Source of the DNA: Mobula hypostoma | Taxonomy: Eukaryota | Assembly: GCF_963921235.1 (NCBI RefSeq) | Contig: NC_086101.1 | Span: 15,996,001-16,060,000 of the forward strand | DNA length: 64,000 nt | Direction: 5' to 3' | Part shown: piece by piece, positions 18,398 through 56,960 of the stretch | Numbering within the stretch: the first letter of the stretch is position 1 | How the letters are laid out: each line of letters opens with the position of its first letter | Program-made: the position numbers and the translations under genes | Notes under the pieces: model-generated | Database searches by the model: none | Seen by the model: only the letters and a program-made list of their open reading frames with translations | What the model was told of the DNA's origin: nothing

Positions 18398-18411
18398 TCA
18401 GCTACGTTTTG
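18398..18411 (-). CDS. Exon 15, coding part (A)KRS-stop; the exon itself spans 18382-18411
   Basis: Acceptor ttctttctctacttcacAG, TGA at 18400-18398, donor CAG|GTAAGA at 18382/18381. Confidence 0.7.
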
Positions 18412-21400
18412 CTGTGAAGTAGAGAAAGAAGCAAATGAGGCATCTAAAGCATCAGTAAACTTTACTGACAGATGTCAGATTAGGACACCTGCTCGATCAT
18501 TTAAGATAATTGATGATGATCTGCTAACTTGGTGCCATTTTCTGGAACCAGCACTATATCCTTTGATGTTTTACCCCCGCTGCTCATTTATTCCAGTCAC
18601 CTTTTACCCTATTCATGTTTTAAACCTCAGTCCCCATTTTACCCCATTGTTTTAATCCCCAGTCCCCAATTAACCCCATCCTGTTTAATCTTCAATCCCC
18701 ATTAAGCTCCATTCCTGTTCAATCATCAGACCCCACTTTATCCCATTGTTTTAATCCCCAGTCCCCATTTAAGCCTATCTTGTTTAATCCTCAGTCACCA
18801 TTTCGCCCCATTCCTGTTTAATCCTCAATCCCTATTTAGCCCCATTTCTGTTTAACCCCCTCAGTCTCCATTTTGCCCCATTCCTGCTTAACCCCCTCAG
18901 TCCCCATTTAGCACCATTCCAATTTAACCTCAAGTCTCCATTTAGCCCCATATCTGTTTAATCTCCTCAGTTCCCATTTATCCCCATTCTTGTTCAATCC
19001 CCTCAATCCCTACTTAGCCTGCTTCCTGTCACCATTTTAACATCTCTGCCTATTTTACCCAGATCCCATAGAACCCGTATTCTCATTTTACACCTCAATC
19101 TCCACTCTAATGACTGTATCCATTTTAACCACTCCATCCTCATTTTAACCCCACTGATATAGTTACCCCATCCCCATGTTATTTCAGTCCCCATTTTAAA
19201 GTTGCCATTTTAACCCCACTGACTAGTTTACCCCGTTCCTATTTAACCCCACGATTTTACCCCAGTCCCTATTTAAACCCCATTGATTATTTTACCCCAT
19301 TCCCCATTTATCCCCAGTATTTTACCCCAGTCCCCATTTTAATCCCACTATTTACCCCAGTTCCCCTGAACCCCATTCACATTTTACCTCTGAGTCTCCA
19401 TTTTAATGACTGTATCCATTTTAACCCCTCAGTCTCCACTTTAACCCCACTGACTATTTAACCTAGTCCCCATTTTAACATCAATATTTTACCCCAGTCC
19501 CTATTTTAACCCCACTATTTTACCGCAGTTCCCATGCAGCCCCAGAATCCTCTTTGCCCCAGTCTCTCCACCATGCTTTGCTACCCTTGATACTCACCTA
19601 TCACGTTCAGCTCGTCGTAGCCGTCGTCCTGCCTGCCAAAGGAAGTAGGGGAGGATGGGGTTAATGAGACCCAGACTCTGTGCTGGTGGCACTTTACGTT
19701 TCTGTGGTGATAGTGTCAAATTTTTATTTTACGAAATTCAGCATTTACCTCTTGTAGTGTGTGCATTGGGGCAGCCCCACAGTATCTCCCTACTCCCACC
19801 ATTACATTCTGCACCCGGTGCACAGTGACACTGGTTGCACTGGGGCCAGACCTTTGGTGCATTTTGTAACAGGCATCCATGCAGTGCCCTCTCCCCCAGT
19901 ACTGTGTTTCTGACCCAATGTTCTGCAGGAAAAGAAGCAAAACTACTCAACTCATTCAAGAGGCGAGTAAAGTCATGAAAAAAAAATGTGTATGCGTTGC
20001 TTGAGAATAATGTCAGTACGATAAACACAGGAGATTCTGCAGATGCTATAAATCCAACGCAACACAGACAAATACCACTCAGCTTCCCTCTCACCTGGTC
20101 TCACCTATCACCTGCCAGCTTGTATTCCTTACCCCCACCATCATTCCCTTCTCATTCCTGCTTCTCTCCTTCTCCCCCCACCACCCCCACTTCCTTTTCA
20201 GTCACGATGAAAGGTCTCAACCAGAAACAGAGTGTTTGTTCCTCTCCATAGATGCTGCCTGACCTGCTGAGTTCCTCCAGCATTTTGTGTGTAACTCTGT
20301 TTACGTGATGCTATGCGATGCTGCTGCAATTAGGTGTTTCATTGCATCCATGCATATGACAATAAGCTCCAGTGTGACTTTTACTCACAGAATTCAACCA
20401 TGTCTAATATGACCATTTGGTGTTCTTTTTGGTTATATATTAATGCATTTTATCATTATTTTAATAGTTTGATTATTTCATTAATATTGAAATTGAATAA
20501 TTATAATAAACATTGAATATTAGAGAAAATGTAGCCGGCTGGTGGCGTAGTGGCATCAGCGCTGGACTTCGGAGCGAAGGTTCCCGAGTTCGAACCCAGT
20601 CGGCTCCTCAGGCAGCTTTCCACCCGTGCTGGGTTGAGCGTCGAGCTAGCAACTCGACCTTGTAAAAAGGAAATTGCCTGCTACAGAAACGTCAACAGCA
20701 AAAAAGTTTGATGTCCTATGTTCTCTTGTGAGTTTAAAGGCAATTTCTTCCTCTTTCTAGAGGAAATGCATTTAAGGTCAGAGGGAGAAATTTCAGAGGA
20801 GATTGTGGAGTAAGTGCTTTTTTAAAAAACACACAGAGTGGTAGCTGCCTGGAATGGTGCAAATTGATATAGAAGTACATTTGAGAGGCTGTTAGATCAC
20901 ACAGGCAGACAGACAGAAAGATACACTCACAGAGTTACTCATACAGGACACACACACACACATCACACAGTTTAAGGTGCTGAAGATTTCTGTGTCTCCT
21001 GCCCTTTCACAAAGGAGTTCTGGACTCCCGCTCCACTCTTGTGAAAATGTTGTTCCCAATCTTCTCTCCAATCCTTCCACCTCTGATTTGGTGCCAGAGT
21101 TAAAGGTGATCTTTACCTGACACGTGCATATCGAACCCTGTACAGTGAAATGAGTAGTTTGCGTCCTCGAACAACATAGTCCGAGGATTATGCTGTGCTG
21201 AAGGGCCTGTTTCTGTGCTGTGATTCTGCACGCTCAGTCACTCTATGTATCCAGCCACTCATAAGTAACCCACTTCAAATCGTGTATCCAGCCACTCATA
21301 AGTAACTCACTCCAAATCGCCATCTTCCACCGATGTCTTGGCAGGAGTTCGGTTTTTGGAGTAACTTGGATATATCACTGCATACTGGATGTTCTCTACA

Positions 21401-24400
21401 GTGGGTACCTTGTGGAGAAAAGGATTAGATTAGAATGATCTTATTACAATCGGCATGGAAATCTAAGCTTTTCACTGTAGGCACGGCAATACAGTGAAGG
21501 ATTAGATTAGACCAGGTCCATGTCTGCCCTGATGCTCTCCGAAGAGCCAGATCCAGAGCCAAGAGATATGACAACCAATCATATCCCACATGATTGTAGC
21601 CGAAACATCTCGTAAAATCTTGCCAGGCTGGCCGATCAACCAAACTTCCAAATATCCCATCCTTCCCAGAGCTGTCTGCCATCCACCCTTGCCTCTAAAT
21701 TCCACCCTCTCTGTCATCTGCAGAACCTGTTATCCAGCAGCCCCTACCAGTTACCACCGTCACACGCTCATCTCTTTGTACAGGCCATCTCCACTTCCAA
21801 GCCCTGGTGCAGGGTTCAGGGTTTTGAATGGAAATGTCCCACACCACCACTCCCCGCCACAGAGGCTGCTCAACCCGATGACTCCTCCAGCAGATTTTTT
21901 GACACTCCAGATTCTAGCATTTGCCTTCTCTTGCGTCTCCAGCTAGTTATTTACAGATGGTTCACTGCAACGAAATCTTAAGGATTATTCATTACGGACT
22001 GTACCTTTAAAAAGAGAGTGAGTGTGCCGCTGGTTCAGAGAGAGAGGCACCGAGCATCTCGTGAGTCGCCATTGTGATAGAAGGGCGGAGCTATATTCTG
22101 GACAGCTGGTGTTCAGCATGTTTGGATATATATACAAGGTCAGCTGGCTTTCTGGTAGACACACAGAAGAAACTGACACCAGATGAGCTTTGAGTGCCCC
22201 AAAACGGGTGGGTTTTGTGGATCGATCAGGAGAATCGACTAGTGGCTCTCGCAGTGCGGGAAAAGGGGTGACCGGTGGAAAGCTATCAGTGTGTTTAACC
22301 CTTGCCTGGGTTTATAGTTTTACCACGTGAAGACGGTACCTTTAGTGTGGTTACATTCGGTGACCTTAAAGGATTCGGAGGGCTACGGAACGATCGACGG
22401 CATCGACTTACTTGGATAACAAATCAGCTCTTTCTCTCCTCAATTCTACTCAGCTGAATATCACGAACTGAACTGACTTCGTTTACATACCATCGTAAAA
22501 CTGTATCAGTTACCACTTAATTTTGAAGAAGTTTGGGTTTTGTATTTACACACCTATATATGCAAAAACTGCTAACCTGTTTGATTTATCTGGTTTCATG
22601 TTACTTTATTACGTAGTTACTAATAAAATAGTGCTAGTTAACAGCAAAACCAGACTCCAGGTGTGTTCCATTACTGCTGTTTCTTTTAACCCGTTCCGGG
22701 TAATGTAATATCACCCACATCGCGTCACAGAATGAAACTCAGCCCACCAGATCAATACCAGCCTGCAATATTCTCTCTCCAACATTCCTAGACCCAGATT
22801 CCACTGCCCACCTTTGCAACTTACAGCGGACTATCAAGTTATCAAGCTGCTCAATTTCGGAATGTGGGAGGAAAAGTACAGCACATGAGGCTGATTAACA
22901 AGATAAGACCCCATGGTATAACAGGAGAGATACTAACATGGTAGAAGATTGGCTGATTGGCAAGTGGGTTGGAAGGTTTGAATAAAGGGGGCCAATTCTA
23001 CTTGACCATTCAAACTGCCTCGTCCCATTGACCATTATCCAGACCAAAGCCATCCATGCCAGATGCCACTGCTATCCAAGTACCTATCCAAACTTCTCTT
23101 AAGCACTGAAATTGAACTCCCATGCATCACTTGCACTGGCCCCTCGTTCCGCATTCACATGACCCGCTGAGATAAGAAGTCATATTGAAATTTGGTCTCT
23201 GGAACTTTTTTGGCAACGGCTCTCAGTTCCAGCCACAAACTTTCCAGAACATTCTCCCAATCCACAATAAATTACATCAACTTCTACTCTTGGTACAGGG
23301 TGTTGGGTCTCACACACAAAACGCTGGAGGAACTCAGCAGGCCAGGCAGCATCTGGGAAAAGAGTACAGTCGACATTTTGAGTCGAGACCCTTCAGCATA
23401 ACTGGAGAAAAAAAGCTGAGGAGTAGATTTAAAAGGTGGGGGAGTGGAGAGAGAAACGCCAGGTGATGGGTGAAACCTGAACAGGGAGGGATGAAGTAAA
23501 GAGCTGGGAAGTAACTTGGTGAAAGAGACAGAAGGTCATGGAAGGAAGAAAAGGGGGAGGATCACCAGAGGGAGGCAATGGGCAGGCAAAGAGATAAGGT
23601 GAGAAAGGGAAATGGGAATGGGGAATGGTGAGGGAGAGTGGGGGGTGGGGGGGGGCATTACCAGAAGTTCAAGAAATTGATGTTGATGCCATCAGGTTGG
23701 GGGCTACCCAATCAGAATTTAAAGTGCTGTTCCTCCAACCTTTTGGATGTGTTGCTCGGATTTCCAGCATCTGCAGATTTTCTCTTGTCTGAGGGTGTTG
23801 GGTCTGGTCATTTAGAATCGAGGTTCTTTGAAAGGCAAGAATGAGACATAAAAGTAGGTAGCTACAATCGTTTTGTTAAGATGTACAAGAAAAATGAACT
23901 CACAAGGAAAAGACAAAGAAAAAGAAATCGTGATTGCCTCAGATTCAGACTAGAGATAACAACATCCCAGCGACAGCAATGAACCTATAAAATAGACAGG
24001 CTCATGTAGCATGATACCTGCTGCAAAGAAACTTAGAAGCTTTTAGAAAAATACAGAATCAGCTGTACTCAAATTACTAGAAAACTTACTGAACAATTTT
24101 CCCATATAGGTGATTACATAAAAATGTAAGCAAGCATAGGAAAGTAAACCTACAAGGAAAGCACTAGGCGAATATCCAACAAGGAGCAGCCCAGTGGGAA
24201 TGTGGGCAGAACAGGTTGCAGGGGTTCAAGTGGAAGAATTAGGGCGGACAGACATGAACAGGCTGAATGGTCATCAATTTGTCAAGGATATGAGCTACTA
24301 TATATGTACTTACCTCTCCATCGGAGACCAGCGAGTTGTCTGGTCTACTCTGGGTGTTCACATCTGTGAGAGAGAATACGAGAATGTCAGTGAACTTCTA

Positions 24401-27400
24401 CCGCAGATGAAAACAACTGGCAAGAACATGGAGAGTGCGGGCGAGGAGGAGTGAATAGTGTCACAGGACACAATTCTTGTTCCTAATTCCTTTTGCTGTC
24501 TCCTTGTGGGTTACTCCTGTGCAGGGATTGGTTTCTGCATTGGGAATAAATGGTGGATTTCACTGGCTGAAAGTGCCCTCTCGTCTGAAGACAATTCTAA
24601 ACCCTGGTCTGCTTACATTGGTGAGTTGTTCATTATTGCACTGAAGTACAGTCATCATACAAACCATACCATTACGTCAGTGCATCGAGATAGTACAAGG
24701 GAAAAGCAGTAACATAATGCTGAATGTAGTGTTATATTTACAGAGAAAGTGTGGTGCAAGGACATGAGGAGGTGGATTGTGAGGTCAAGACTCCATCTGA
24801 TCGTACAAGCGAACGATTCAATACTCTGATAACAGTGGGGTAGAAGCTGTCCTGAATCCTGGTGGTACGTGCTTTCAGACTTTTGTATCTACTGCCTAAT
24901 GGGATGGGGAATGAGCGACAATGACCAGGGTGGATAGGATCTTTGATTATGCTGGCTGCTTTGCCAAGTCAGCGAGAAATACAGAGTGCATGGAGGTGAG
25001 GCCAGTTTCCATGATGTGCCGAGCTGTGCAATTCGATGTGGTCATGGGCACAGCAGTTGCCCTACCAAGCCGTGATACTGCCTTAGGAAGTAGAGGTGTT
25101 GGTGAACTTTCCTGGCTGTAGCATCAATGTGGACGAACCAGGACAGGCTGTTGGTAATGCTGACAACTAGGACCCATGGGACAGATGGCCTGCTGAGGTG
25201 AGGAGTGACTGGGGTGTCAGGGAGTTCGGAGGATGCACCCTTTTTTGCATCAGCCACACTCAAGGGGATTTACTTACCCATGCCATTGTCCGTTGAGATT
25301 TTGAATGTCTTCAGTCTGTGAGGAGAAAGAGGGGGAAGGAGGTCACTCATTGATAAAGTGAAAAGGGGGGTGGTTGGGGGAATTGTCCTGCTCATGTATT
25401 GCTTCATAAACCTGTGTCGCTGTGGCCAGTACTGGGGCAGGAGGTGCCCCAGACAGGAGTAGCCAAATTACCAAAAGACAATGGGATAATGCATCAGGGC
25501 GAAGAGAGGGACCTGGAGTCAGATATGTACGCAGGCCCAGTGTAATCTTTGTGCAGCAGCCTTGGGTCAGGTGTCTGACAGCCTGACTAACCAAGAAACT
25601 ATCAACCCCTGCTTTAAATATACCCAATGAATTGGCCTCTGCAGCCGTCCATAGCAATGAATTCCATAGACTCATCACCCTCTGGCTGAAGAAATTTCTA
25701 CTCATCTCTGTTCTAAATATACATCCCTCTATTCTGAGGCTGTGCTCTTTGGTCCTAGATTCCACCACTATAGGAGCAATCCTCTCTGCCTAGGCCTTTC
25801 AATATTCATAGAGCTATAAAGAAGTACAGCACAGAAAATAACCCTTCGGCCATGTAGTCCATGCCCAAAACCATTTAAACTGCCTAATCTCATCAACCTG
25901 CACCAGGTCTACAGCCCTCCAGATTCCTACTATTCATGTCCAAACTTCTCTTAAACTTTGAAGTCGATCTCGTGTGGAGCACTTGCATGGGCAGCTCATC
26001 CCACACTCTCATGACCCTCTGAGTGAAGAAGTTTCACCCCCATGTTCCCCTTAAACTTCTCATCTTTCACCCTTAAGCCATGACAAATGGTTACAATCCC
26101 ACCCAACCTCAATGGAAGAAAGCCTGCTTGCTATCATCCTATCAATATCCCTCATAATTCTATAGGTTTCAATGAGATTCCCCTTCTTTGTTCTAAGCTC
26201 CAGGGAGTACAGGTCCAGAGCCATCAAATGTTCCACATACCGTAAGCTTTTCATTCTGGATCATTCTCTTGAAACTCCTCTGGACTCTATCCAGTGCTAA
26301 AGCATCTTTTCTTAGATATGGGGCCCAATACTCCAAGTGCAGTCTGACCAATGCCTTATAAAGCCTTAGCATCACAACCTTGCTTTTATATTCTAATCCT
26401 CTTGAAATGAATGCTAACATTACATTTGCCTTCCTTACCACTGACTCAATCTGATAATCCACCTTTGGGAATCCTGCACAAGTTGCACCTCCAAATTTTG
26501 AATTTTATCTCCATTTAGAAAATAGTCTATGCCTTTATTCCTTCTAGCAAAGTTCATGATCACACACTTCTTTACACTATATTCCACCTGCCACTTTACC
26601 CATTCTGTCAGAGCCCCTGCTTCCTCAACACTACTTCTCTCTCCATCTATCATTGTATCATCTGCAAACTTGGCCACAACCCTATAAATTCTGCTGTTCA
26701 AATTGTTGACATAAAATGTGAAACGAAGCGGTCCTAATACTGACCCCTGAGGAACAGGACTAGACATCAGCAGTCAAATAGGATTGGTCCCCTTTATTCT
26801 AACCTTCCAACACTCCTGGCAATTTTCTATCCATGCTAGTATCTTTCCTGTAATTACGTGGTGTCTTATCTTGTTAATCACCTCCATGTGCGGCACCTTG
26901 TCAAAGGCCTTCTGAAAATCGAAGTAAGCAACATCTACCGACTCTCCTTTATTATTTCCTTAAAGAATTCCAACAAATTTCTCAGGCAATATTTCTCCTT
27001 AAGGAATCAATTCTGAATTTAGCCTACTTTATCATGTACTCTGAAACCTATTATTAATAATGTACTCTAACATCTTCGCAACACTGAAGTCAGGCTAACT
27101 AGCCTATAATTTCCGCCTTCTGCCTCCCTCCTTTCCAGAAGAAATGAACTAGCTTACCTTCATATTTCATCTTTTCTCTCCTTATGGATTTTTAGTTGCC
27201 TTCTGTTGGTTTTTAAAAGCTTCCCAATCCCCTAATATCTCACTGTTTTGCTATATTATATGCCCTCTCTTTTGCCTTTATGCTTTCCTTGACTTTCTTT
27301 GTCAGCCCCGGTTGATTCGCCTTCCCTTTAGAATACTTCTTCATCTTTGGGATGTATCTATCTTGTTCTTCCCACATTGCCCCTAGAAGCTCCAGTCATT

Positions 27401-30400
27401 GCTGCTCTGCTATAATCGCTGATAGTGACCCCTTGCAATCAGCTTTGGCCAGCTGTACACTCATGCCTCCGTAACTCCCTTTAATCCACTGTAATATTTT
27501 TTCTCCCTCTCAAAATGCAGGGTGAATTTTATCATATTAAAGTCACCGCCTTCCAAAGTGTCTTTGCTGTAAGGTCCGTTATCAAATTTGGTTCATTACA
27601 CAACACCCAATCCAGAATCGCCTGTCCCCCACTGGGTTCAACCATAAGCTGATCTAAAATGTCATCTCGCAGGAATTCTAGGAATTCCCTCTCGGGATCC
27701 AGCACCAATCTGATTTTCCCAATCTACCTGCACATGGAATTCTACCACGACTATCATAACATTCCCCTTGTTAAATGTCTTTTCTTGTTCCTGCTGAAAT
27801 CTGTATCTCACATGCTAGCTTCGGTTCAGAGCCTGTATATAACTTGCATCAGGGTCTTTTCAGCCTTGCAGTTTCTTAACTCTACCAATAGGAATTCTAC
27901 ACCTTCCAATCCTATGCCTCTGATTTCTAAGGATTTCATCTCATTTTTTACCAGCAGAGTCACACCGCCCCCACCTGCCTGCCCTATTGGTACAAGGTGT
28001 ATCCTTAAGCTCCCAATTATGATTTTTCAGCAACATGATGCCCACAATATCACATCTGCCAATCTCTAATTGTGCCAAAGATAATCTAATTTATTCTGTA
28101 TAACGTGCAATAAATGGCGACTCCTTTGCTTGCATCCTCGGAAACAGCTCTATTTCTATCTTTTTCCCTTTAAAGGTTCTTCTGAAGACCCTGACCTGGA
28201 GTTACATACTGACTTTGGTTCTTTGTGGGGATGGGACCCGCTCTCAGGGCCTCACGACCGGCTGCTTTTTGATATCCCTGGATGCGGCCTGGAAGACTAG
28301 CGCGCCTTCAGGCTGCTAGATTTTCGTGGCTCTGGAGATGGGTTGATTCAAGGTCAGTGTCCGACTGAGGCGTCGCAGAAAAACATGGAGCATCGGGAGC
28401 AGTGGGCTAGCTGCCGGCTGTGTGCCCAGAGGCGTACGTTCTTTGGGCAGAGAGCTTGGTTAAAAAATGACCCAGAAGACTTTTAAAACCCTATTATCAG
28501 TGAGTTGTTTGTTATGTCTCCTCTGTCATTGTGAAACAGGGACATGTTTTTTCCCTTATTAGGGCAAGAGAGAGCCTGTTGCATGCGAATTACCGGGTAA
28601 ATGAGTAGTCTTTGGAGTACTGCAAGTCTGTGTCTTTATTGATATTTTGCTGTACGTTTGACTGCTTGGTGGAGTGCGCCGATGCTTTTCACTGGTGGGG
28701 AAGGGGGGACTCGCTGCCCTGCTGCTGCTTGTGCGTGGGAGGGGGAGCTGGTAGGGGGTCTTTGGGGTTCAAACGTTTAACTGTCAATCATTCTTTGGGG
28801 CACTGCTCCGTTTTCCTGAATGTTTGCGAGAAAAAGAAGTTCAGGATGTATATCGTGTACATTTCTCTGACATTAAATGTACCCATTGAACCTATTGAAA
28901 TAGTCCTGTATTCATCACCCTTTTTGACTTTGACCCCATGTTACACTTCAGCCCATCCCACTGACTACAATTTTGCTCCATCATCTACCTAACCTCACTA
29001 TACAATGCATCAACTTGAATACCAACTACTCCTACCATGCTGTCAGGGCACCAGGCTTCACCGCTTCATCCTGCTGGTCCAGTCTGCTCACTGGATGGAC
29101 AACAAACTGCACCATTACCTGATAATGAACTCTCCTCAGCAGAGGGTCATTTTGGGATGGTGATACATCTCACTGCTTCCCTGCTGAATAGAGCACGCAG
29201 ACAGCAGTGTAACACTGGACACTGGGTAACGCTCCATTTGTAGCAGGCCAACTAATCTAGCGGTGGCTGAATCCATACTCACCCTTTCATTGGTGTGTAG
29301 ATCAATTGGTCTTGTCGCTGGAAAGAATGAAAATTAAGGCATGTCACAGATCATAAGACCATAAGAGAAAGGAGTATAAGACCATAGACATAGAAACGGA
29401 ATTGGGCTATTCAGCCCATCAATTCTGCTCTGCCATTCCAACCTGGCTGATCCCAGATCCCACTCAACCCCACACACTGTCTTCTCGCCATATCCTTTGA
29501 TGCCCTGACCAATCAGGAAATGATCAACTTCTGCCTTACATATACCCATGGACTTGGCCTCTACTGCAGTCTGTGGCAGAGAATTCCACAGATTCACTAC
29601 TCTCTGCCTAAAAAAATTCATTACACTGTTCTAAAGGGTCACCCCTCAATACTGAGGCTGTGCTCTCTAGTTCTGGATACACCCACCCAAGGAAACATGC
29701 TCTCTACTTAAACCCTATCTGATCTTTCCAACATTTGGTAGGTTTCAATGAGATTCTCCCATATCCGCGTGCTGCTAAATTCCAGTGAGTACAGGCCCAA
29801 AGCTGCCAAACGCTCCTCAAGTGTTAACTCTTTCATTCCTGTAATCATCCTTGTGAACCTCCTCTGGAATCTCTCCAACGACAACAAATCCTTTCTGAGG
29901 TATGGAGCTCAAAACTGTTGACAATTGTTGACAATACTGCAAGTGCGGCCTGACTAGTGTCTTATAAAGGCTCAGAATAATCTCCTTGTTTTTATATTCG
30001 ATTCTCCTTGAAATGAATGCCACATTGCATTTGCCTTCTTTACCACAGACTTAACCTGTAATTTAAACTTCTGGAGTCTTGCACGAGGATCCCTAGCTCC
30101 CTCTGCACCTCTGATGCTTGAATTTTCTCTCCATTTAAATAATAGTCTGCACGATTGTTCCTTTTACCAAAATGCATTATCATTCATTTCCCAGCACTGT
30201 ACCCCATCTGCCACATTTTTGCCCATTCTTCCAATTTGTCAGAGCCTTGCAGAAATCGCAATGCTTCCTCAGCACTACCTACCCCTTCACCTACTTTTCC
30301 ACAAAACCATCAATTCAACTATCCAAATCATTGACAAACAATGTGCAAAGCATCACTCCCAATACTGACCCCTGAGGAACACAAGTAGTCATTGGCAGCC

Positions 30401-33400
30401 AACTGGAAAAGACCCCCTTCATTCGCACTCACTGTCTCCTGCCTGTCAGCTATTCTTCTATCCATCCATATCTCTTTCCTTTAATGTCACTGGATTTTAT
30501 CTTGTTAAGCAGCCTCTTGTGTGGCACCTTATCAATCGCCTTCTGAAAATCCAAGTAAATAACATCCACTGCCTCTCCTTTGTCCACCCTGCTTGTAACT
30601 TCCTTGAAGAACTCCAAAAGATTTCTCAGGCAAGATTTCCCTTCACAGAAACCATGCTGACTTTGACTTATGGATTCCAACAGTTTCTCAACCACTGGGG
30701 TTAGGTTAACTGGCCTACAATTTCCATTCTTTTGCCTTCCTGTCTTCTTAAAGAGTGGAGTGACATTTGCAATCTGTGACCATACCAGAATCAAGTGATT
30801 CTTGAAAGATCACGCCCAGTGCATGTTTGATTCTATGACATCAAGAGATTTTAAAAATTCCAAGGTCAAGTTTATTGTTCGATGCACAAGTACAGTATGT
30901 GCATGTACAGGTGCAATGAAAAGCTTACTTGCAGCAACATCACAGGCATCAGCATCAGGTACACAACATTCACAGAAAAATATGTATTAAACATGAAGCC
31001 TACACAACATGCAAAGATGAGAAAGTCTGCAGATGATGGAAATCCAAAGTGACACACACAAAGTGCTGGAGGAACTCAGCAGGTCAGGCAGCATCTATGG
31101 AAAAGAATAAACTGTCGACGATTCAGACCGAGGCCCTTCTTCAGGACTCAGAAGGAAGGGGTAAGATACCAGAATTAAAAGGTGAGGTGTGGGGAGAAAA
31201 AGAGTCTAGTTGGCAGGTGTTATGTGAAGCCAGGTGGATTTGAAAGGTCAAGGACTAGACAAGAAAGAACCAGATAGAAAAGAAGAGTGTACCATAGGAA
31301 GAAAGGAACCCAGAGGGAAGGAATAGGCAGATGAGAAGAAGTGAAAGGTCAGAATGGGGAATAGAGGTAGTTTGTGGGGGGAGGGGGAATTGCTTCCCAG
31401 AAGGAGTAATCAATATTCATGCCATCAGATTCGAGGGTACCAAGACGGAGTATAAGTTGTTACTCCTCCACCCTGAGGTTGGCCTCACCTTGGCAGAAGA
31501 GGAGGCCATAGATCGACACGTCAGAATAGGAATGGGATTTTGGAATTAACCTGTTTGACCACCAGGGGAGTCCTGCTTCTTGCGGATGGTGAGGAGGTGT
31601 TCGATGAAGCAGTTCCCCAATTTACAACGTGTCTCACCAATGCAGAGGAGGTCATATCAGGAGCACCAGACACAACAGACATAATCGCACATGAAGTGTT
31701 GCATCACCTGGAAGGACTGTTTGTAGCCCTGAATGGAGGTGAGGGAGGAGGTGTAAGGACAGGTGTTGGGTTGGCATGGACTAGATTAGTCAAAGAATAG
31801 AATGGAATTGAACTTTATTGTCATTGTTCAAGACAAGGAGATTGTGGTGTTACTCCAGTCTGTGCAAAACATATTTACAGTGCATGTAGTACAGCTTAAT
31901 TTAAAAAAAACGATATTTACATGCAACAAGTGACCTTGCGAGTCCATAACACTCAAAGGCCATTGTCGTTATTAGAAGAACCTGCTTTTGTGTTGCAGAT
32001 CTCGATGGCTCCAATTACTTAAGAGAAAACCCAATTAGAACAAATACAAAGTCTATTGTAGTGTAATGTTGCTCTATTGAGGTAGTGATTAGGGTTGTGC
32101 AGAATATCCATGGATTTTATTAGGAAAGGAGTCTGGGATCTTGTGTGGAGTTAATAGGACCTCCCTGGGTCAACAGAGGAGGCAGAGGTCACTTTAGGTC
32201 AATAACGGTGATTAGGAGCTCTCCTGGGTCAATAACATAGTCATATGTATGCACAAGTGCAATGAAAAACTGACTTGCAGAAGCATCATAGGCATACAGC
32301 ATCAGTTACATAACATTCACAAGAAAAACATCAATGAAGCATCAATTACACACAATTTTTGCAATAGAGAACACACTTAGACCAAAAAGAGTTCATCTAT
32401 AGTTGCAAAATGTTGTCATACTGGGGCAGTGAATAGGGTTGGGCAGATTGGATCAAGAACTGGCATTGAACCGAGAAGTAGAGAACATCAAACTGGTGAC
32501 ATTTTGTTACAAATCAGTTTTCTTCTTATGAACAATCCGAGTGAAAAGGACACCATCTTACCGGGCATGCAGGGGCATTCCCATCTTGAGCCTGTTGTGA
32601 AATAAGATATTACAATGAGCATTTCTATTGGTCTACAGGAGCTCGAGAGCCTGGGTGTCCAGACTCAACATTTAGACTGAGACAGGGCAAGATTAAAGGA
32701 GGTGGGCAGAGTAAGTTTTTCTTTCCACACCGAGTGATGATGCTGGGAATGTGCTGCCAGGGGTAGTGGTGGAGAAGGCAGATACAATGGAGATGTTTAA
32801 GAGGATCGTAGATACCCACATGACATTGGACTGAATGGAGGGAAGTGAACCATGTACAAATGGAAGAGATGCACATAATTAGAAACCCTTTAATTAGTCC
32901 AGCATTAATTGTGGGCTGAAATCCTATTCCTGTGCTCTACTGCTTGACATTCTATGTCCTATGCCCTTTGTTCCCAGAACAGCTTCTTCCCCATTGCTGT
33001 CAGAGTTTTGAATGACACCCCTCTTTCACGTCCCTGTCGCGGTGGTGCTGCCACTTCCCGAACCTTTAATTCTATCTTATCACTTCAGAGGTCAAATACA
33101 TTTATTATTGAAGAACATATACTGTATCTCCCCTTGAGAAAAAATTTCTTGCAAGGATTTACAGTAAAGTAAAGAAATACAATAGAATTTATGACAAACT
33201 ATGTTGAACAAAGCTGACAAACAACCAGAGTGCAAAAGAAGACTTACAATAAACAAAAATAAATAAATAATATTGAATTTGAAAGTTCTTGAAAGCGAGT
33301 CTATTGGTTGTGGAGTCAGTTTAGCGCTGAGGTGAGTGAGATTATTCACACTGGTTCAGGAGCCTGATGGTTATAGGGCAGGGTTTGAAACCTGGGATCC

Positions 33401-39400: not shown

Positions 39401-42400
39401 TGATAAGTGTGTGATCTCCAGCCAGTCACCCCAATGTAATTCTTGTTATCTGTAGTCTCCCATCTACATTCAGCGATGGTCAGCCGGTCCCGTTGGTGAT
39501 GACACTGGAAGTGAAGGCAGGAAATCGGACAGGGCTCCACGAGTAGAAAGTTGATGGGGGAGGGTGGGTATTAGTGGTTGGTAATAAGCTCAGTATTGTC
39601 TCGGGCTGGGAAACCACTCACGTGTGTGACTCACTGTCAGCCATACTCCTTCTCCGATTTCCTCACCAATCCCGTCTATCCGTACTTTGCAGTAGTACAT
39701 TCCGGAATCGCTCTCTCTCACATCCACCAGCTTTATGGAAGCTTTGAAGGAATCCTCCTGGTCAGGCCCAAGGACGCGCCCTGCATACTCTGCCGTCCTG
39801 TTGGAGACTTCGGATGTGTTCCGGTACCAGCTGTAGAACACAATGTCTCCGGAGTGATTGGCATTATGGCTACAGACCATGAGGACCGTTTCACCCACAC
39901 CTACAAATATACTGGACTGGCCTTGTGTAACCGTGAAGCTCTTGCTTTTTCCTGCAATGGGAAAAGAGAAAGTCAATGCTTCCCATTTAGAAATTGGCCA
40001 TTGGGGTGAGAATTAAGGCCCAGTGTTAAAGACTGGACACATTCAACATTTGAGATTGTTTGTTGTCAATCGTCAGTACAACAGCTTGAAGGAGGATGAA
40101 ATCAGAGTTTCTTCAGTTCTGATGCAGCATTAAAATGAGACAATAAGCATAAAAACAAAAGACGTTTATAAATACACACCCATTCTATAAAACACAATGT
40201 ACAAGTAACTGTAAAGTGACAGTGCATGGGAAGGGTGCTGAGGGCTGTGGAGAGGAGTGGCTGATGTGGATGTAGTGGTGGTGGGGTGGGTTAATGATGG
40301 AGGTGTTGGTCAACCTGATACAATTGGATGAAGTGTCTGTTTTTGAGTCTGGTCCATGATGGTGGATATGCCGATACCGAGGTTGTGTTCTGCATTTTGA
40401 AGGGCTCATATGACAAGCTCTTCATTGGCTTGTCATATGAAGATTATTTGATGGCTCTGGGTCTGTATTCGCTGGAATTCAGAACAAGGGGTGACCTCAT
40501 TGAAACCTATCGAATAGTGAAAGGCCTTGATAGAGTGGATGTGGGGAGGATGTTCCTATGGAGGACGAGTCTAAGACCAGAGGACACAGACTCAGAACAG
40601 AGGGGCGTCCTTTTTTGAATGGAGCTGAGGAGAAGTTTCTTCAGCCATTGAGTGGTTAATCTCTGGGATTTGTTGTCACAGACAGCTGTGGAGGCCAAGT
40701 GTTTATGTCAATGATTTCCGTTTGGAAGTTGGCTATTGGGGTGAGAATTAAGGCCCAGTGTTAAAGATCGGATGCATTCAACATTCAAAATTGTTTGTTG
40801 TCAATCGTCAGTACAAGAGTTTAAAGAAGGATGAAATCATTGTTCATTTTTTTTTAAATAATTATTTCTGTTTTTGCACAATTTTTAAATTTAACTATTT
40901 AATATACATATAAATAAATAAACACACACACACACACACACACACACACCACACCACACACATACACGCACACTCAGACTTATACTGTAATTGACCTATT
41001 TATTTATTATTTTTTTCTATATTATCATGTACTTATTGCATTGTATTGCTGCTTAAGTGAACAAATTTCACGATATATGCCGGTGGTTTTAAACCTGTTT
41101 CTGGTCCTGATCCTGTCATCAGTAGGAGTTGGAATTGGGGATAGAATCTTAGAAAGATTGAGGTGGTAAAACGTGAGCAGAAATATTTTAACGAAGAGTG
41201 TGATTGGTCTATGGACAGGACAGTTGGGCAGTTACTATTTTAAATATGTTATACAGTACTGTACAGGAACTGGCCCTTCGGTAAACAATGTTGTGCCAAA
41301 CTAGTTGGTGACCAGATGTACAATTAAACTCACCCTTCCCAACATAATGTCCGTATCCCTCATTTCCTGCACATCCATGTGCCTGTTTAAGAGCCTGTTG
41401 AATGCCTGATTGCATCTGTCTGTGAAAAACACTTGCCCGCACTTCTCCTTTGAACATACCCCCTCTTACTTTAAATTCATGCCCTCTGGAATTGGACATT
41501 TTTCCCCTGTGACAATGATATCAATTGTCTTCTCTGTCTGTGTCTCTAATAAACTATAAACCTCTATCAACTCAGAGGCTTCAGCGGCAGCGGAAGACAG
41601 GCGGAGCACCACCAAACGTGATGAGTTCCTTCTCCTTGTGTGGGGAATTTTTCTTAATTTTTAAACCATAAAAGAGAGATCGGGTCCAGAGGAGTGGTCA
41701 TCATCAGAGTGGGACGAGAAGAGGCTGAGGCCAAAGAAACAGGGAGGAAGGGTAGGTTTTTCCCTTTCGTTATTGCGAATTTGGTCTTGGCGGCCCATAG
41801 TACATTGCAGGCAGGATGGCAGATATGGTTGTGGAATGCTGCTCCTGTAAGATGGGGATTCATGGAACCTGATGGTCTCACTGATGACTACACCTGTGAG
41901 AAGTGCAGCCAACTCCAGCTCCTGAAAGACCACATTAAAGAGCAGGAGCTGGAGTTGGATAAACTAAGGATCATCTGGGAGGGAGGTAAGCTGATAGATA
42001 AGAGTTTTGAGCAGATCTTTACATCCAGAGTGCATAATTCAGGGAGTAGATGGGTGAACACTGAAAAGATAAAGGGAGAAAGATGTCATTGCAGCGCCCC
42101 CCTGTGGCCATTCCCCTCAGCAACAGGTATACCCCTTTCGATACTGCTGAGGGGGCTGACCTCCCTGGGTAAGGCAGCAGCAGACAGACCAAAAGCACTG
42201 TAATCGGCTCTGAGCCTCAGAAGAGTAGGGTGAAGTCAGGCGAAGCAATAATCATAGGGGACTTGATAGTTAGGGGGCAAATAGGAGACTCGGTGGCAGC
42301 AAAAGAGACGCCAGGACAGTGTGTTGTCTTCCAGGTGCTAGAGTGCAGGATGGCTCTGAGCGGTTGCAGAATATTCTTGAAGCGGTTGGTGAGCAGCTGG

Positions 42401-48400: not shown

Positions 48401-51400
48401 TGGCTGGGAAAGCGGGACCAGGACAAGGAACTGGGAACTAGGAGCTTGGGTTTGGACTCCGAGCCAGAGACAGGACAAGGACCCCGAACCTGGGTCTTGA
48501 CTCGGGCTCGGACCCCCGGAACTAGGCAAGGACATGACGTGGCTATAGACCTGGACATGGCTTGGGTCCTTCGAGGCTTCACTACAGGACTAGAGAGCTT
48601 CTTGTTCCTCGAGTCTTGGCTACAGGACTAGACGAGGCTTGGGTTCTTCGAAGCTTGGCTACAGGACTAGACGAGGCTTTGGTTCTTCCAGGCTTGGCTA
48701 CAGGACTAGACGAGGCTTGGGTTCTTCGAGGCTTGGGTATGGTCTCCGAGCCAGAGACTAGGCAAGGACTCAGAACCTGGGTCTTGACTCGGGCTCGGAC
48801 TCCGGAAGTAGGCAAAGACATGACGTAGCTACAGGACTGGACAAGGCTTGGATTGAGGAGCTCCCGGGCAGGACGAGGAGCTCCTGGGCAGGACGAGGAG
48901 CTCCTTCTTGTAACGCAGGGCTGGGCCCCTTCCTTGGACGCCGATCCGGGATGCTTACTAGGATGCGGGACTGGGATGACTGCCGAGGTAAACCACCGAG
49001 GAAACAATCAGGGATTCAGATGGAGAGGGGAAGGGAACAAACCAGCCTCAGGGTAACGGCAAAGACGACCTGACTTACCCAAACGGAGGCGAGGACAGGA
49101 AGGGACAGATCCAACCGCAGGGTAAAGGCAAGGACAGCCTGACTTACCCCACGGAGGGAAGGACAGAAAGGGAGCTCATTCTGGGGTGGCTCTGAGTCTC
49201 GGAGCGGCCAGCAACCTTGGCTGGCTACGGAAACAGCCGAATCTATATCCAGTTTGGAGCGGCAGACGGCCGCTCAGCTGGCCCCGGAAACGGCCGAATC
49301 CATACCACGGTGACTGCTCCGACTAGAGACAACAAGGCTCCATGAAGCGGTGGTCTTCCAACCAGCCCTGGAGATCAGGAATGACTGCTCTAGCTGTCCT
49401 CTGGCGGGTTGCTCCAAGGGGATACTGACGAGATGAACCAGTCCCCACACTCGATGCCAGGGCCACTTACAGTCCCAGCTGCAAGACGAGCATCAGGTGC
49501 CTATGATTAAGCCCAACTGAAACAAGGGACAGCAGAAAGACCAGGAGTCGGGAGTCCACGGGCCGGACCGCTAACCCGAATGGGGACTTCATGGACTGGA
49601 CCATGACACTTCTGTCCATTAGGAGAAGGAAGAAGAGAGAATGTCTCAGGTGGGTGGGGTCTTCGATTATACTGGCTGTTTTACTGAGGCCTGAAAAAGT
49701 CAGTAGACAGAGTCCATGGAAGGAAGGTTTGATTTGGGAACACACCCTCCCCTTTTTCTGTGCTGAATCTCTTTTGTTATTCTCCTGTTGGTGAAATACT
49801 AACAATAAAAATTAAAAGCCTGCAGATGCTGAAATCTGCGGTAAAAACTGGGAATGCTGGAAATATTCAGCAGGTCAGGCAGCATCTGCAGGATGAGAAG
49901 CAGAATGAATGTTTGAAGTGAAAGATCATTCCTCAGAACTGGGTAAAAAAAAAAGGTTGTTTACAAGATTCTTCTTTTTTTTCGCTTCCCTGCTCTGAGG
50001 ATGGGTCGCTGACTTAAACATTTAACTGCTTCTCTCTCCGCAGTGGCTGACTGACCTGCTGAGTGTTTCCATCATTTTCCTGCCTTGGCCAAATTCTGTT
50101 TGGGTGGTGGGTCTGATTCGCACGGACAAGGAGATACTTGATGGTTGACTTACCTCTCACTGTGAGATACGTCCCCGCCCCATACATTTCCAATTCCATT
50201 GTCTTCAACTTGCAGAAGTACATCCCAGAATCACTCGGCCGCCCGTACTTCAGTCGCAGAGAAACGTCTATGCTGTTAGTGGAGGGTTCACCCCCTTCAA
50301 ATCTGAGGAACCGGCCTCTGTACTCTGCTGTTTCATTGGTCACTTCTGTTCCATTTCGGGCTCCCTTGAACCAGTGGTATGACCATATCTTACTCGTGGA
50401 ATTGTGTCTGCATGGAATAACCACCGTCTCCCCTTCTGTGGCAACAATGCTGGACTTGTCCTGAATCACCACAAACTTCTCAGCACCAATGCCTGAAAGC
50501 AGGGAGCAAACTTTAAAATGGGTAAATTGGTTTATTATGGTCACATGTACTGAGGTACAGTGAAAAACTACGTTTTGTCTGCCATCCATACAGATCATTT
50601 CATCACATCGATTCGTGAGTTAGTGCAAAGAAGGAACAATAGCAGAATGCGGAATAAAGTGTTACAGTTACAGAGAAAGTGCGGCTCGGAGCCTGGAAAG
50701 AGAGAACAAAGGAGAATCAGAGCATAGTTCATTGAAAGCGGCAGACAGGTAGTGAAGAAGATGTTTAGTACGCTGATCGCTCAGTCAGAGCTTTCCGGAT
50801 CGGAGTCTAGAAGTTATGTTTCTGTTGTACAAGTCGTTGGTGCCGTTGCATGTGGAATATTTTGTAGAGAATTGGCCATCCTATTATAGATGTTACTAAT
50901 TAGAAAGCATGCAGGAAAAAAAATCACCTGGATATCGTCTGAATCTGGGGGTCTGAGTTACAAGGAGAGGTTACATAGACCAGGACCTTATTCTCTGGAA
51001 TGTAGGAGATTGAGGGGTGACCTGATGCAACACAATAAGGGACATAGATAGTCGGAAAGCACCATTTTTCCACCCGGGGGGGTGGGGGGTGGCGGGGTTG
51101 CTCAAAACAAGAGGACATAGGAGAGTTTTAACATCGATGTTAGGACAATTTCTTCACGCAAATTGTGTTACGTGTTTGAAATGAGCTGAGAGAAATGGCG
51201 TTTGCGGTGAATAAATTACCAATATTTTAAAGCCTTCCAGATAAGTACATGAATAGGGGAGGTGTAGGGGGCAGTGGGCCAAACGCGGGCAGATGGGACT
51301 ACTTCGCTGGGCAACACGGTCGGCATGGAGGGGAATAAACAGATGACGTTTCGGGCTGAGACCCTTCATCAGGATTGGAAAGGAAAGAGGGAGAAGCGAG

Positions 51401-51826
51401 AAGTCGGCGTGCTCAGTGTTCGACCTGGAATTCAGGGTCCCCCTTTCCCCCGTGTGCTAGTTCGGGGGTCGATGTTTGACGCCTGGAGGCTAGAAGCCGG
51501 GGCGTCGTTCTTGGAATTGGAGGGCAGTCTGTGTGTGCGCGTGGGAGCGAAGGAAAGGGGCTTGTTTTTTTGCGTTTTGTTGTGCTCTGTGTTGTCCTGC
51601 CGACATTGTGGACATTAATGTTGGCGCCGGAATGTGTGGCGACCCTCGCGGGCTGCCCACAGTGCCTCCGTAGGTGTGTTGGTTGTTAACGCAAATGAAG
51701 CAGACGAACCTTCCCGCTTTTCCCGCGCTGCCCATTGCCTTCTCCCCCAAGCTGTAGCTGTAAAGGAACAGAAAGCTACTTACCGGAGGAGACGGTCAGC
51801 AGCCACAGAATGGCGCCCACCTTCAT
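18398..51826 (-). CDS. Whole gene span: two-V-domain NKp30/NCR3-family (VJ-type IgSF) receptor with a multi-tyrosine ITIM/YxxM tail; 15 coding exons, 414 aa predicted
   Basis: Exon lengths 43+339+330+114+19+38+41+30+35+38+50+98+21+35+14 = 1245 nt (415 codons including TGA). Every junction is GT-AG and phase-compatible, and the domain order is signal-V-V-TM-tail. Confidence 0.85.
18615..19545. repeat. Degenerate C-rich minisatellite (aa(t/c)ccc(c/t)cagtccccattt) in intron 14
   Basis: Dozens of ccccatt/ttaaccc units. Confidence 0.85.
19598..19632 (-). CDS. Exon 14, 35 nt, QDDGYDELNVI (YxxL)
   Basis: Acceptor cccctacttcctttggcAG, donor TAG|GTGAGT, phase 2-1. Confidence 0.82.
20527..20700 (+). 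mobile_element. tRNA-derived SINE
   Basis: A box tggcgtagtgg and B box gttcgaaccc, followed by a non-tRNA tail. Confidence 0.75.
21117..21137 (-). CDS. Exon 13, 21 nt, VRYARV(R) (ITIM)
   Basis: Acceptor atttcactgtacAG, donor CAG|GTAAAG, phase 2-2. Confidence 0.8.
21311..21408 (-). CDS. Exon 12, 98 nt, VPTVENIQYAVIYPSYSKNRTPAKTSVEDGDL(E) (ITIM IQYAVI)
   Basis: Acceptor ccttttctccacaAG, donor GGA|GTGAGT, phase 0-2, open throughout. Confidence 0.85.
21966..22710 (+). mobile_element. Solo LTR (gypsy-type)
   Basis: Decayed TG(C)AAC...GTAA(T)A termini, 4-bp TSD tcac (21962-65, 22711-14), AATAAA near 22622. Confidence 0.65.
23320..23790 (+). mobile_element. Penelope-like fragment with a short inverted tail
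   Basis: Shared family motifs (gctggaggaactcagcag; ccatcaggttgg...ctaccc). Confidence 0.7.
24314..24363 (-). CDS. Exon 11, 50 nt, (D)VNTQSRPDNSLVSDGE
   Basis: Acceptor ttctctctcacAG, donor GAG|GTAAGT. Its only open frame is phase 1-0. Confidence 0.82.
25278..25315 (-). CDS. Exon 10, 38 nt, LKTFKISTDNGM
   Basis: Acceptor ccctctttctcctcacAG, donor TGG|GTAAGT, phase 2-1; bridges exons 9 and 11. Confidence 0.75.
25545..28080 (-). mobile_element. Stacked CR1 LINE fragments
   Basis: ORFs 26193..26462 and 26435..26767 give CR1 RT/C-terminal text (VPQGSVLGP, VAKFADDT, KANVMLAFISRGLEYK). Confidence 0.75.
28095..28900 (+). mobile_element. Non-autonomous retroposon
   Basis: 5' aaatggcgactcc..., 3' attaaatgtacc(attgaacct)n-like tail. 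Confidence 0.5.
29283..29317 (-). CDS. Exon 9, 35 nt, RQDQLIYTPMK(G) (YxxM motif)
   Basis: Acceptor ttttcattctttccAG, donor AGG|GTGAGT, phase 0-2. Confidence 0.78.
29360..30800 (-). mobile_element. CR1 LINE 3' portion
   Basis: ORFs 29817..30023 and 30450..30794 (DFQKAIDKVPH) and a (tctatgg)n tail. Confidence 0.75.
31015..31790 (+). mobile_element. Penelope-like fragment
   Basis: Family head plus GIY-YIG complement. Confidence 0.7.
32562..32591 (-). CDS. Exon 8, 30 nt, AQDGNAPACP
   Basis: Acceptor cttatttcacaacAG, donor CCG|GTAAGA, phase 0-0. Being symmetric, the frame alone does not require it. Confidence 0.65.
33956..33996 (-). CDS. Exon 7, 41 nt, (D)DLTARQLDDGPGT
   Basis: Acceptor aattttacAG, donor ACG|GTAAGT. 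Its only open frame is phase 1-0, which is the phase exon 6 requires. Confidence 0.8.
34330..35450. mobile_element. CR1 3' fragments in opposite orientations
   Basis: Minus fragment at ~34330-35020; plus fragment given by ORF 35029..35337 (RLRELGLYSLERRR). Confidence 0.7.
35753..35790 (-). CDS. Exon 6, 38 nt, QQLSTLNDSTTA
   Basis: Acceptor tttttctcttcAG, donor CGG|GTAAGT, phase 2-1; 97-nt intron separates it from exon 5. Confidence 0.8.
35888..35906 (-). CDS. Exon 5, 19-nt cytoplasmic micro-exon (N)SVLFQ(R)
   Basis: Long pyrimidine tract ending cttcacAG, donor AAG|GTGAGT, phase 1-2. Confidence 0.8.
35950..36590 (+). mobile_element. Penelope-like fragment
   Basis: Minus-strand ORF 36063..36548 contains EEQHLIFHVGSLQPGGTNIDFS. 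Confidence 0.75.
38554..38667 (-). CDS. Exon 4, transmembrane helix (KMRFVTLLLVILLTVFGISGSILLVSILFRRKVCSKE)
   Basis: Acceptor tttttccccccacAG, donor AAA|GTAAGG, phase 1-1. A 26-residue uncharged stretch is followed by an RRK stop-transfer motif. Confidence 0.92.
39622..39951 (-). CDS. Exon 3, Ig V domain 2 (NKp30-like; YCKVRIDGIGEEIGEGVWLTV)
   Basis: Within ORF 39590..39976. Acceptor ttgcAG, phase-1 donor CAC|GTGAGT. EVSNRTAEYAGRV resembles EVRNGTPEFRGRL of NKp30 (recalled from memory). Confidence 0.95.
41570..47350 (+). mobile_element. Near full-length degenerate CR1 LINE in the V1-V2 intron (antisense to the gene)
   Basis: ORF1 zinc-finger/esterase fragments (41694-42680), endonuclease (EHFGGS), RT ORFs 45528-47090 and a ttctatg tail. 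Confidence 0.85.
43476..45200 (+). mobile_element. Rex1/Babar-like LINE nested in the CR1
   Basis: RT text (DYSSAFNTI, FADD, VERVNNFKFLG), ending aataaagtcaattcaattca; CR1 sequence resumes at about 45201. Confidence 0.8.
48259..49608 (-). mobile_element. Second solo LTR-like element of the same family as 3066-4405 (1350 bp)
   Basis: TGTCA...TGACA termini, 5-bp TSD cttct (48254-58, 49609-13), homologous ends, and a different internal ~36-39-bp repeat. Confidence 0.85.
50154..50492 (-). CDS. Exon 2, Ig V domain 1 (NKp30-like, joined J motif YGAGTYLTV)
   Basis: Within ORF 50014..50598. Canonical C...W...DSGMYFC residues, acceptor ctttcAG, donor GAG|GTAAGT, phase 1-1, sequons NST, NGT and NET. 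Confidence 0.95.
51784..51826 (-). CDS. Exon 1, signal peptide MKVGAILWLLTVSS(G)
   Basis: ATG in context aacgATGa, hydrophobic core, donor CCG|GTAAGT in phase 1. Joins V1 to give ...VSSGIGA-EKFVVIQ. Confidence 0.9.
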
Positions 51827-53463: not shown

Positions 53464-53598
53464 NNNNNNNNNNNNNNNNNNNNNNNNNNNNNNNNNNNNN
53501 NNNNNNNNNNNNNNNNNNNNNNNNNNNNNNNNNNNNNNNNNNNNNNNNNNNNNNNNNNNNNNNNNNNNNNNNNNNNNNNNNNNNNNNNNNNNNNNNNN
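53464..53598. other. Assembly gap (135 N)
   Basis: Run of n. Confidence 1.
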
Positions 53599-54334: not shown

Positions 54335-54372
<38 letters not shown>

Positions 54373-56699: not shown

Positions 56700-56960
56700 C
56701 AAATGTCAACTAACTTTGCACTAGATCTTTACCCCGCTCCCACCCTTGCCTCTCTCACAGCGTCCGGTTTCCGGCCGCGTGGAAAACTTGTCGCTCAGCG
56801 TTCGGCAGCTGCGGTAGCGGTGTGAAGAGCTGATGCAGGCAAACCGCCCGCTCCATGTTCAGCCCAGCGAGAAGCCGTGAGAAGCCGTGAGCAGTCGTCG
56901 ACTCACCGCCCCACCGAGCTCAGAGATCAGCAAGTGAACTGGTTGTTTTTATTACCGCAG
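56700..56960. promoter_or_regulatory. CpG-rich non-repeat segment; candidate promoter or first exon
   Basis: Dense CpG, an ETS-like ttccgg, a minus-strand donor GCG|GTGAGT at 56907/56906; present only in duplication copy 2. Confidence 0.35.

Follow-up and report, generated by a model that had tools for sequence, protein, structure and literature searches.

This analysis concerns a 64-kb stretch of contig NC_086101.1 of the devil ray Mobula hypostoma (hereafter the window, meaning the whole 64,000-nucleotide stretch). The question raised by this locus is whether three separate reading frames on its minus strand belong to one intact receptor gene, to which receptor lineage such a gene would belong and how its product would signal. 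The evidence described below makes it likely that the window holds an intact further NKp30 (NCR3)-like paralogue of a devil-ray receptor cluster, with 14 exons predicted to encode a 407-aa type I membrane protein that is built from two variable (V) domains, a transmembrane segment (TM) and a tail. The gene extends a known and already diverse shark and ray family by a new member that is apparently unmodelled.

Exon chain and V domains of the predicted receptor

Between 18 and 52.5 kb, the list of open reading frames (ORFs) contains three relevant minus-strand entries: two immunoglobulin V-like ORFs, both of which match the Pfam V-set family, and one hydrophobic ORF. These represent the exons for the membrane-distal V domain (V1), the membrane-proximal V domain (V2) and the TM, and they are the only exons of the gene visible as long ORFs. 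An ATG at 51826 starts a 43-nt signal exon that ends at G/GTAAGT, and the signal, V1, V2 and TM exons are spliced together in phase 1. A preliminary description of this DNA had proposed a 15-exon chain running from 51826 to 18398 with the domain order signal peptide, V, V, uncharged TM and long tail. The chain was rebuilt with GT-AG sites at all introns, agreeing phases and a coding length of 1245 nt (414 aa), and the domain order was reproduced. For 14 of the 15 exons, RefSeq proteins from ray and shark paralogues or orthologues contain matches in the same order; the remaining exon, which encodes VRYARV, is probably spurious, and with it the length of 414 aa. The closest guide to the chain is XP_062903900.1 (Mobula hypostoma, 'uncharacterized protein LOC134346462', 419 aa), which has the same architecture as the window gene. 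A tblastn search of the window with this protein recovers 12 exons in order on the minus strand, eight of them from the tail and the others encoding the signal, V1, V2 and TM. The two remaining ones, exon 5 with 19 nt and the last exon with 14 nt, agree with the residues of this protein once spliced. Because of these matches, the 14 exons are supported by an independent gene model. All 14 are open, 13 of 13 introns are GT-AG, and the predicted chain is far beyond what chance would produce; the likely product is probably a protein of 407 aa (Table 1).

Table 1. Coordinates of the predicted exons and of other features in the window.
Feature	Position	Strand	Evidence or remark
Exon 1, start codon and signal peptide (MKVGAILWLLTVSS)	51784..51826	-	Donor GTAAGT, leaves phase 1; 14/15 residues identical to XP_062903900.1
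Exon 2, membrane-distal VJ-type V (V1), J-like YGAGTYLTV	50154..50492	-	Pfam V-set 5.5e-11
Exon 3, membrane-proximal VJ-type V (V2), J-like IGEGVWLTV	39622..39951	-	Pfam V-set 7.3e-13; 91% to XP_062903900.1
Exon 4, 26-residue uncharged TM, then RRK stop-transfer	38554..38667	-	tblastn to XP_062903900.1 residues 237-273
Exon 5, 19-nt mini-exon NSVLFQ	35888..35906	-	Matches ANSLLFQR of XP_062903900.1 among the frame-compatible candidates listed from TM exon to exon 6
Exon 6 (QQLSTLNDSTTA)	35753..35790	-	tblastn with XP_062903900.1, rebuilt chain
Exon 7 (DDLTARQLDDGPGT)	33956..33996	-	tblastn with XP_062903900.1, rebuilt chain
Exon 8 (AQDGNAPACP)	32562..32591	-	tblastn with XP_062903900.1, rebuilt chain
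Exon 9, YxxM motif (LIYTPM)	29283..29317	-	tblastn; motif kept in 9/13 homologues checked
Exon 10 (LKTFKISTDNGM)	25278..25315	-	tblastn with XP_062903900.1, rebuilt chain
Exon 11 (DVNTQSRPDNSLVSDGE)	24314..24363	-	tblastn with XP_062903900.1, rebuilt chain
Exon 12, ITIM (NIQYAVI)	21311..21408	-	33/33 residues identical to XP_062903900.1
VRYARV, 21 nt (exon 13 of the preliminary description)	21117..21137	-	Frame kept, good splice sites; probably not a real exon
Exon 13 of the 407-aa model, acidic YxxL (QDDGYDELNVI), hemITAM-like	19598..19632	-	13/13 residues identical to XP_062903900.1
Last coding exon, AKRS then TGA (18400-18398)	Coding 18411-18398; exon 18382..18411	-	GTAAG donor after 18382
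Downstream exon, homologous to C-terminus of Hypanus XP_059825197.1 (EDGSMNQ vs EDGTVNQ)	17380..17506	-	CAGTAG double acceptor; EDGSMNQ at 17503; 3' limit provisional
LINE/LTR fragments	26193-26767 (-), 29817-30794 (-), 45528-47090 (+), 6380-6823 (+), 8559-9562 (-)		RVT_1; also an Integrase_H2C2 fragment

The family of the V domains was approached by profile, by fold and by phylogeny. A profile made from an alignment of 15 V domains of the subfamily (profile A1) has NKp30 as its best single-domain match in the PDB (8e-19, 70.7 bits, with the whole domain covered), followed by antibody and T-cell receptor (TCR) V domains at ~50 bits and SIRP-alpha at ~47 bits; pIgR outranks NKp30 in this search only through the sum of five domains. 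An AF2 model of V1, calculated with 59 related V domains in the alignment, has a predicted local distance difference test (pLDDT) value of 88 and was used in place of an earlier 15-row model (pLDDT 57.7). Among Swiss-Prot folds, NCR3 occupies ranks 1, 2, 4, 5 and 6, with TM-scores of 0.80-0.82 and a root-mean-square deviation (rmsd) of 2.4-3.4 Å, and SIRP-alpha occupies rank 3 with an rmsd of 4.0 Å. Membership of the CD28 family, considered for the YxxM motif, was rejected: no CD28-family protein is present among the 30 Swiss-Prot fold matches listed.

In a maximum-likelihood tree of 63 V domains, which contains no named outgroups (SIRP, TCR, NITR, XMIV), both V1 and V2 of the window fall in a 28-row clade (98/93) that consists only of ray and shark genes with the shared tail. 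Adjoining clades contain the curated nurse-shark NCR3 sequences QTT61898 and QTT61904, and these clades form, together with that of the window gene, a 43-row group (84/90) that leaves a lungfish NCR3-like row outside and has no named non-NCR3 outgroup to compare with. From the profile, the V1 fold and this position beside curated nurse-shark NCR3, we conclude, on a tree of this limited composition, that the gene is part of the chondrichthyan NCR3 radiation and has NKp30-like V domains. The preliminary description is therefore borne out in its NKp30-like assignment and, through homologues in both rays and sharks, in its attribution to a cartilaginous fish. The two V domains differ in variability. 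V1 varies most among the ray paralogues around the C''-D region and the FG loop, and V2 is nearly fixed. That the membrane-proximal V domains of rays and sharks are orthologous is not rejected by the approximately unbiased test (p = 0.36), yet it is unseen in the tree; a 3-residue gap before the 'ASI' strand, common to the ray and shark membrane-proximal V domains, supports it.

Tail motifs and predicted signaling

The TM agrees with its earlier description as uncharged, none of its 26 residues being D, E, K or R. It is followed by a tail of ~140 aa that is spread over ten mini-exons in the 407-aa model and carries three tyrosine motifs: a YxxM motif with the family consensus [SL]-I-Y-x-P-M, an immunoreceptor tyrosine-based inhibitory motif (ITIM) with the consensus [IV]-[QH]-Y-[AT]-x-[ILV], and an acidic YxxL motif with the consensus D-[DYF]-[GE]-Y-[DE]-E-L-N. 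The last of these resembles a hemITAM, the single-YxxL form of the immunoreceptor tyrosine-based activation motif (ITAM). All three motifs are kept in Mobula, Hypanus, Scyliorhinus, Carcharodon, Heterodontus and Stegostoma, and an alignment of homologues from rays to sharks shows that the YxxM and the ITIM noted in the preliminary description are conserved. Exons 12-14 of the 407-aa model, which encode the ITIM, the acidic YxxL and AKRS, have 100% protein identity to XP_062903900.1, and some linker exons have 50-70%. Searches with the tail returned no family from Pfam, chance-level matches only from the ESM Atlas and, in word-indexed searches of limited sensitivity, no relatives outside cartilaginous fish. 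Some family members have lost tail tyrosines: Mobula LOC134346461 reads ELICPPM and DDNEMN at the corresponding positions, and a Heterodontus protein reads SIDTPM (an X2 isoform is also among the tyrosine-loss forms). These may be signaling-dead or decoy variants.

YxxM is the binding motif of the p85 subunit of phosphoinositide 3-kinase (PI3K) (PMC11599192), and a tri-acidic sequence followed by YxxL is the hemITAM of CLEC-2 and Dectin-1 (PMC3576117, PMC11624271). The receptor is predicted not to pair with CD3zeta or FcRgamma. V1 would bind the ligand, and the signal would then run through the receptor's own phosphotyrosines, with the ITIM recruiting SHP-type phosphatases and the YxxM recruiting PI3K p85. 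The acidic YxxL could act as a Syk-binding hemITAM or, because it lies 29 residues after the ITIM tyrosine, as a second docking site for a tandem-SH2 phosphatase. Self-signaling by the receptor is well founded as an inference from these motifs. The preliminary description went further and called the receptor probably inhibitory, which is not established, as a conserved hemITAM-type acidic YxxL and a PI3K-type YxxM stand in the same tail. An inhibitory or modulatory net effect is most likely, though its sign is not settled.

The opposite output deserves the most consideration among the alternatives, even if it is rather unlikely. Here the acidic YxxL would recruit Syk as a hemITAM and, together with the YxxM, give the receptor an activating or co-stimulatory role, while the ITIM would do no more than tune the response. 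The sequence D-D-G-Y-D-E-L-N is close to the DEDG-YxxL of CLEC-2 and Dectin-1; moreover, the acidic YxxL is the most conserved element of the tail from rays to sharks and is retained in a Heterodontus protein that has neither the YxxM nor the conserved tail ITIM. The placement of the motif argues the other way. Inhibitory receptors carry pairs of ITIMs and immunoreceptor tyrosine-based switch motifs (ITSMs) at a comparable spacing, and an ITIM 29 residues upstream of the acidic YxxL suits such a pair. In addition, the known hemITAMs are confined to type II C-type lectins, where they sit at the N-terminus (PMC11624271).

Integrity and lineage of the window copy

A HMMER search with V2 against 1.84 billion representative proteins gave as top matches two Mobula hypostoma proteins, one from Heterodontus and one from Scyliorhinus. 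Further full-length relatives are Hypanus sabinus XP_059825197.1, Mobula LOC134346461, Scyliorhinus XP_038671255.1, Carcharodon XP_041068140.1 and Heterodontus XP_067865770-775, and single-V relatives occur in Heterodontus, Stegostoma, Rhincodon and Chiloscyllium. The V-V-TM-tail arrangement is modelled in RefSeq for the Mobula paralogue, Hypanus and Carcharodon; the Scyliorhinus model is V-V-tail without a TM, and the Heterodontus model has three V domains. The subfamily ranges from one to five V domains, and two V exons in one reading frame are also found in paralogues and orthologues. The gene had been presented as hidden and its architecture as possibly uncharacterized. The first holds for the window copy, whereas the same architecture has already been modelled by RefSeq in other loci and species: the family architecture is modelled, unnamed, in at least five species and is undiscussed as far as the accessible literature shows. 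Three consecutive Mobula RefSeq accessions (XP_062903898-900) include none identical to the window product (0/3), and the window copy is apparently not modelled as a protein; it may be unannotated or called a pseudogene.

Similarity along the gene is mosaic. V1 (50154-50492) is nearer to the Hypanus orthologue XP_059825197.1 (85-86%) than to XP_062903900.1 (81%), and the last three coding exons (18398-21408) are 100% identical to XP_062903900.1, with exons 12-13 at 76-81% to Hypanus. This pattern points to gene conversion in the cluster or to its motif exons being very strongly constrained. Locus numbering in two sharks suggests that members of the subfamily are clustered with NCR3-type genes. 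In Chiloscyllium punctatum, the subfamily member GCC38507 lies, by locus-tag order, between the NCR3-type genes GCC38504 and GCC38509 (they are on one scaffold or on scaffolds of nearly identical size, given as 541,863 and 541,878 bp), and in Scyliorhinus canicula the subfamily and NCR3-type genes LOC119975535 and LOC119975537 have neighboring numbers.

Several points weigh against an intact NKp30-like paralogue that signals by itself. The gene model of the window copy is a prediction from sequence, and every signaling step is predicted from motifs. No protein of the window's own was found in database searches whose length ranges and shared words should catch it. The tree has no named outgroups. 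The SIRP-alpha V is a near tie in the V1 fold search and the best non-antibody match for V1 alone. Finally, the window copy seems to carry an 8-nt deletion relative to its paralogues, deduced from protein comparison, that ends the protein early at AKRS. The paralogues and Hypanus extend past AKRS with LQPEEATNQ or LQAEGDTNQ and one more exon; in the window, the ancestral reading AEENTNQ is present in another frame, one base off, at 18402-18382. An AG located 10 nt downstream of the CAG acceptor of the last exon would, if used, bring this frame back. All three conserved tail motifs lie upstream of the AKRS end. The downstream exon, which is homologous to the Hypanus C-terminus, is probably 3' untranslated region in the window copy; as the stop codon precedes the next exon junction by 16 nt, nonsense-mediated decay of the transcript would not be expected. 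At the double acceptor of this exon (17501-17506), use of the first AG gives a TAG stop right after ...TNQ, as at the C-terminus of XP_062903900.1, and use of the second leads to EDG..NQ, the ending seen in Hypanus and in Mobula LOC134346461. The two C-terminal forms among the homologues may go back to this NAGNAG choice.

It is unlikely that the window copy is a recent pseudogene or silent duplicate and that the paralogues do the work. The frameshifting deletion, the failure to find the protein of this locus in databases and introns full of debris from long interspersed nuclear elements (LINEs) would fit such a history. However, the 14 exons are open, their 13 introns are all GT-AG and the motif exons are 100% identical to those of an annotated paralogue; the frameshift costs only residues beyond the last conserved motif, and the stop lies where no decay of the transcript is expected.

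A SIRP rather than NKp30 lineage for that gene is quite improbable. In single-sequence searches of solved structures, the best non-antibody match of V1 is the SIRP-alpha V (3e-9, vs 1e-5 for NKp30), and V2 matches NKp30 at 2e-6. SIRP-alpha is also first by E-value when the V1 model is compared with the PDB by Foldseek, its tail likewise carries an ITIM, and RefSeq names such as 'SIRP beta-like' and 'tyrosine-protein phosphatase non-receptor type substrate 1-like' are attached to relatives. The ambiguity of the single sequences is resolved by profile A1, which favors NKp30 by ~23 bits over SIRP. In the same Foldseek comparison, NKp30 has the best TM-score and rmsd (2.6-2.9 Å), in addition to its top Swiss-Prot ranks. 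No C1-set domain is matched in the window or in XP_062903900.1, the only V-set matches in the window being the two described above. Automatic RefSeq names vary even between isoforms of one gene ('SIRP beta-like', 'pIgR-like', 'turtle-like', 'NCR3-like'); they carry no weight here because even isoforms of one Heterodontus gene bear two different names.

The VRYARV exon has no counterpart in any of eight aligned homologues, which include two Mobula paralogues and Hypanus. When its own quality was taken as the threshold (at least 9/13 pyrimidines, YAG and at least 7/9 donor matches), nine frame-preserving, stop-free cassette candidates, itself included, were found in 32 kb of introns (0.27 per kb). 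About 0.45 such candidates are expected by chance in the 1.68-kb intron that holds it, so the exon is no better than chance. A blastn comparison of its surroundings with the window revealed no repeat family that would explain it. The exon was rejected as a likely chance cassette, with eight equally good candidates elsewhere in the introns, and the tyrosine pair YARV-x5-YDEL most likely does not exist in the predicted tail. Canonical ITAM spacing exceeds five residues. A real 15-exon, 414-aa isoform, activating through a YxxV-x5-YxxL ITAM-like pair, is hence highly improbable despite a reasonable acceptor, a CAG/GTAAAG donor and a preserved frame, given the absence of the exon from 8/8 homologues, the rival cassettes and a spacing below the canonical one.

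Surroundings, significance and comparison with known receptors

No other gene was found within the 64-kb window. A tandem duplication of ~3.0-3.5 kb, with copies 82-95% identical, extends over 52018-58420 and starts ~190 bp upstream of exon 1. It includes a CA-rich, microsatellite-like tract; a second copy of the signal exon was not found in it. At 53464-53598, inside the first duplication copy, the sequence consists of 135 consecutive N, either an assembly gap or masked bases. Broken LINE reverse-transcriptase ORFs (Pfam RVT_1) are present in introns 2, 8 and 9 and downstream of the gene, and an integrase fragment of a long-terminal-repeat (LTR) retrotransposon is also present.

To our knowledge, NKp30 is the one natural-killer receptor that can be traced from sharks to humans. 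It is central to arguments for an origin of antigen receptors in the proto-major histocompatibility complex (MHC), and shark NCR3 is reportedly MHC-linked. With this locus, a ray gene cluster gains one more copy, apparently unmodelled, and attention is drawn to a tail that is common to the subfamily and whose three tyrosine motifs sharks and rays have both conserved. A variable distal V beside a near-fixed proximal V and near-fixed motif exons is what would be expected when ligand recognition diversifies around one signaling module. The picture of the family is unchanged, since public databases already contain NCR3 forms with an uncharged TM as well as models with several V domains. A broader proposal, that sharks and rays keep a self-signaling subfamily of the NKp30 lineage with one to five V domains and a tail of YxxM, ITIM and hemITAM-like YxxL, all three retained since sharks and rays diverged, is offered tentatively and with considerable doubt. 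If true, the acidic YxxL would give the immunoglobulin superfamily its first type I receptor with a hemITAM-type motif. If, in addition, the tail is ancestral, NKp30 would have begun as a self-signaling inhibitory or co-stimulatory receptor in the style of CD28 or PD-1, and only later would it have lost the tail and acquired the TM arginine.

One close comparison is with XP_062903900.1, XP_059825197.1, XP_038671255.1 and XP_041068140.1, which, like the window gene, have two V domains and then the three tail motifs in unchanged order. The TM is present in three of them and absent as a stretch from the catshark model XP_038671255.1. The four models come from other loci or species and are annotated only as 'uncharacterized protein'. 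In XP_062903900.1, V identity to the window is 81-91%, and the window copy ends sooner, at AKRS. The hemITAM receptors CLEC-2 and Dectin-1 likewise have an acidic run followed by G-Y-x-x-L (PMC3576117, PMC11624271). In contrast to the window product, they are type II C-type lectins with an N-terminal motif, whereas the predicted ray protein is a type I member of the immunoglobulin superfamily with its motif near the C-terminus; the likeness is one of motif only, and the proteins are not homologous. SIRP-alpha comes almost as close in the structure of its VJ-type V and also has an uncharged TM and an ITIM tail, but its ectodomain is V-C1-C1 and its tail carries four ITIM-type tyrosines, as opposed to V-V and another motif set in the window gene.

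Mammalian NKp30 has one V domain, an arginine in its TM and a short tail, and it relies on CD3zeta or FcRgamma. It shares with the window gene a VJ-type V-set domain encoded in one exon with a G-x-G J-like motif, and, among solved structures, it is the profile's best single-domain match and has the lowest fold rmsd. The predicted ray receptor differs in having two V domains, a TM without arginine or other charge, and a tail of 140 aa with tyrosine motifs of its own. Nurse-shark NCR3 (QTT61898, QTT61904; Kinlein et al. 2021) has V domains in the same chondrichthyan radiation in the outgroup-free tree. The published nurse-shark set comprises one form with a lysine in the TM and no tail and another with an uncharged TM and a tyrosine-bearing tail, and in bamboo shark and catshark the homologues of the window gene have NCR3-type genes as neighbors. 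What sets the window gene apart from shark NCR3 is a separate, well-supported subclade with a three-motif tail and one to five V domains.

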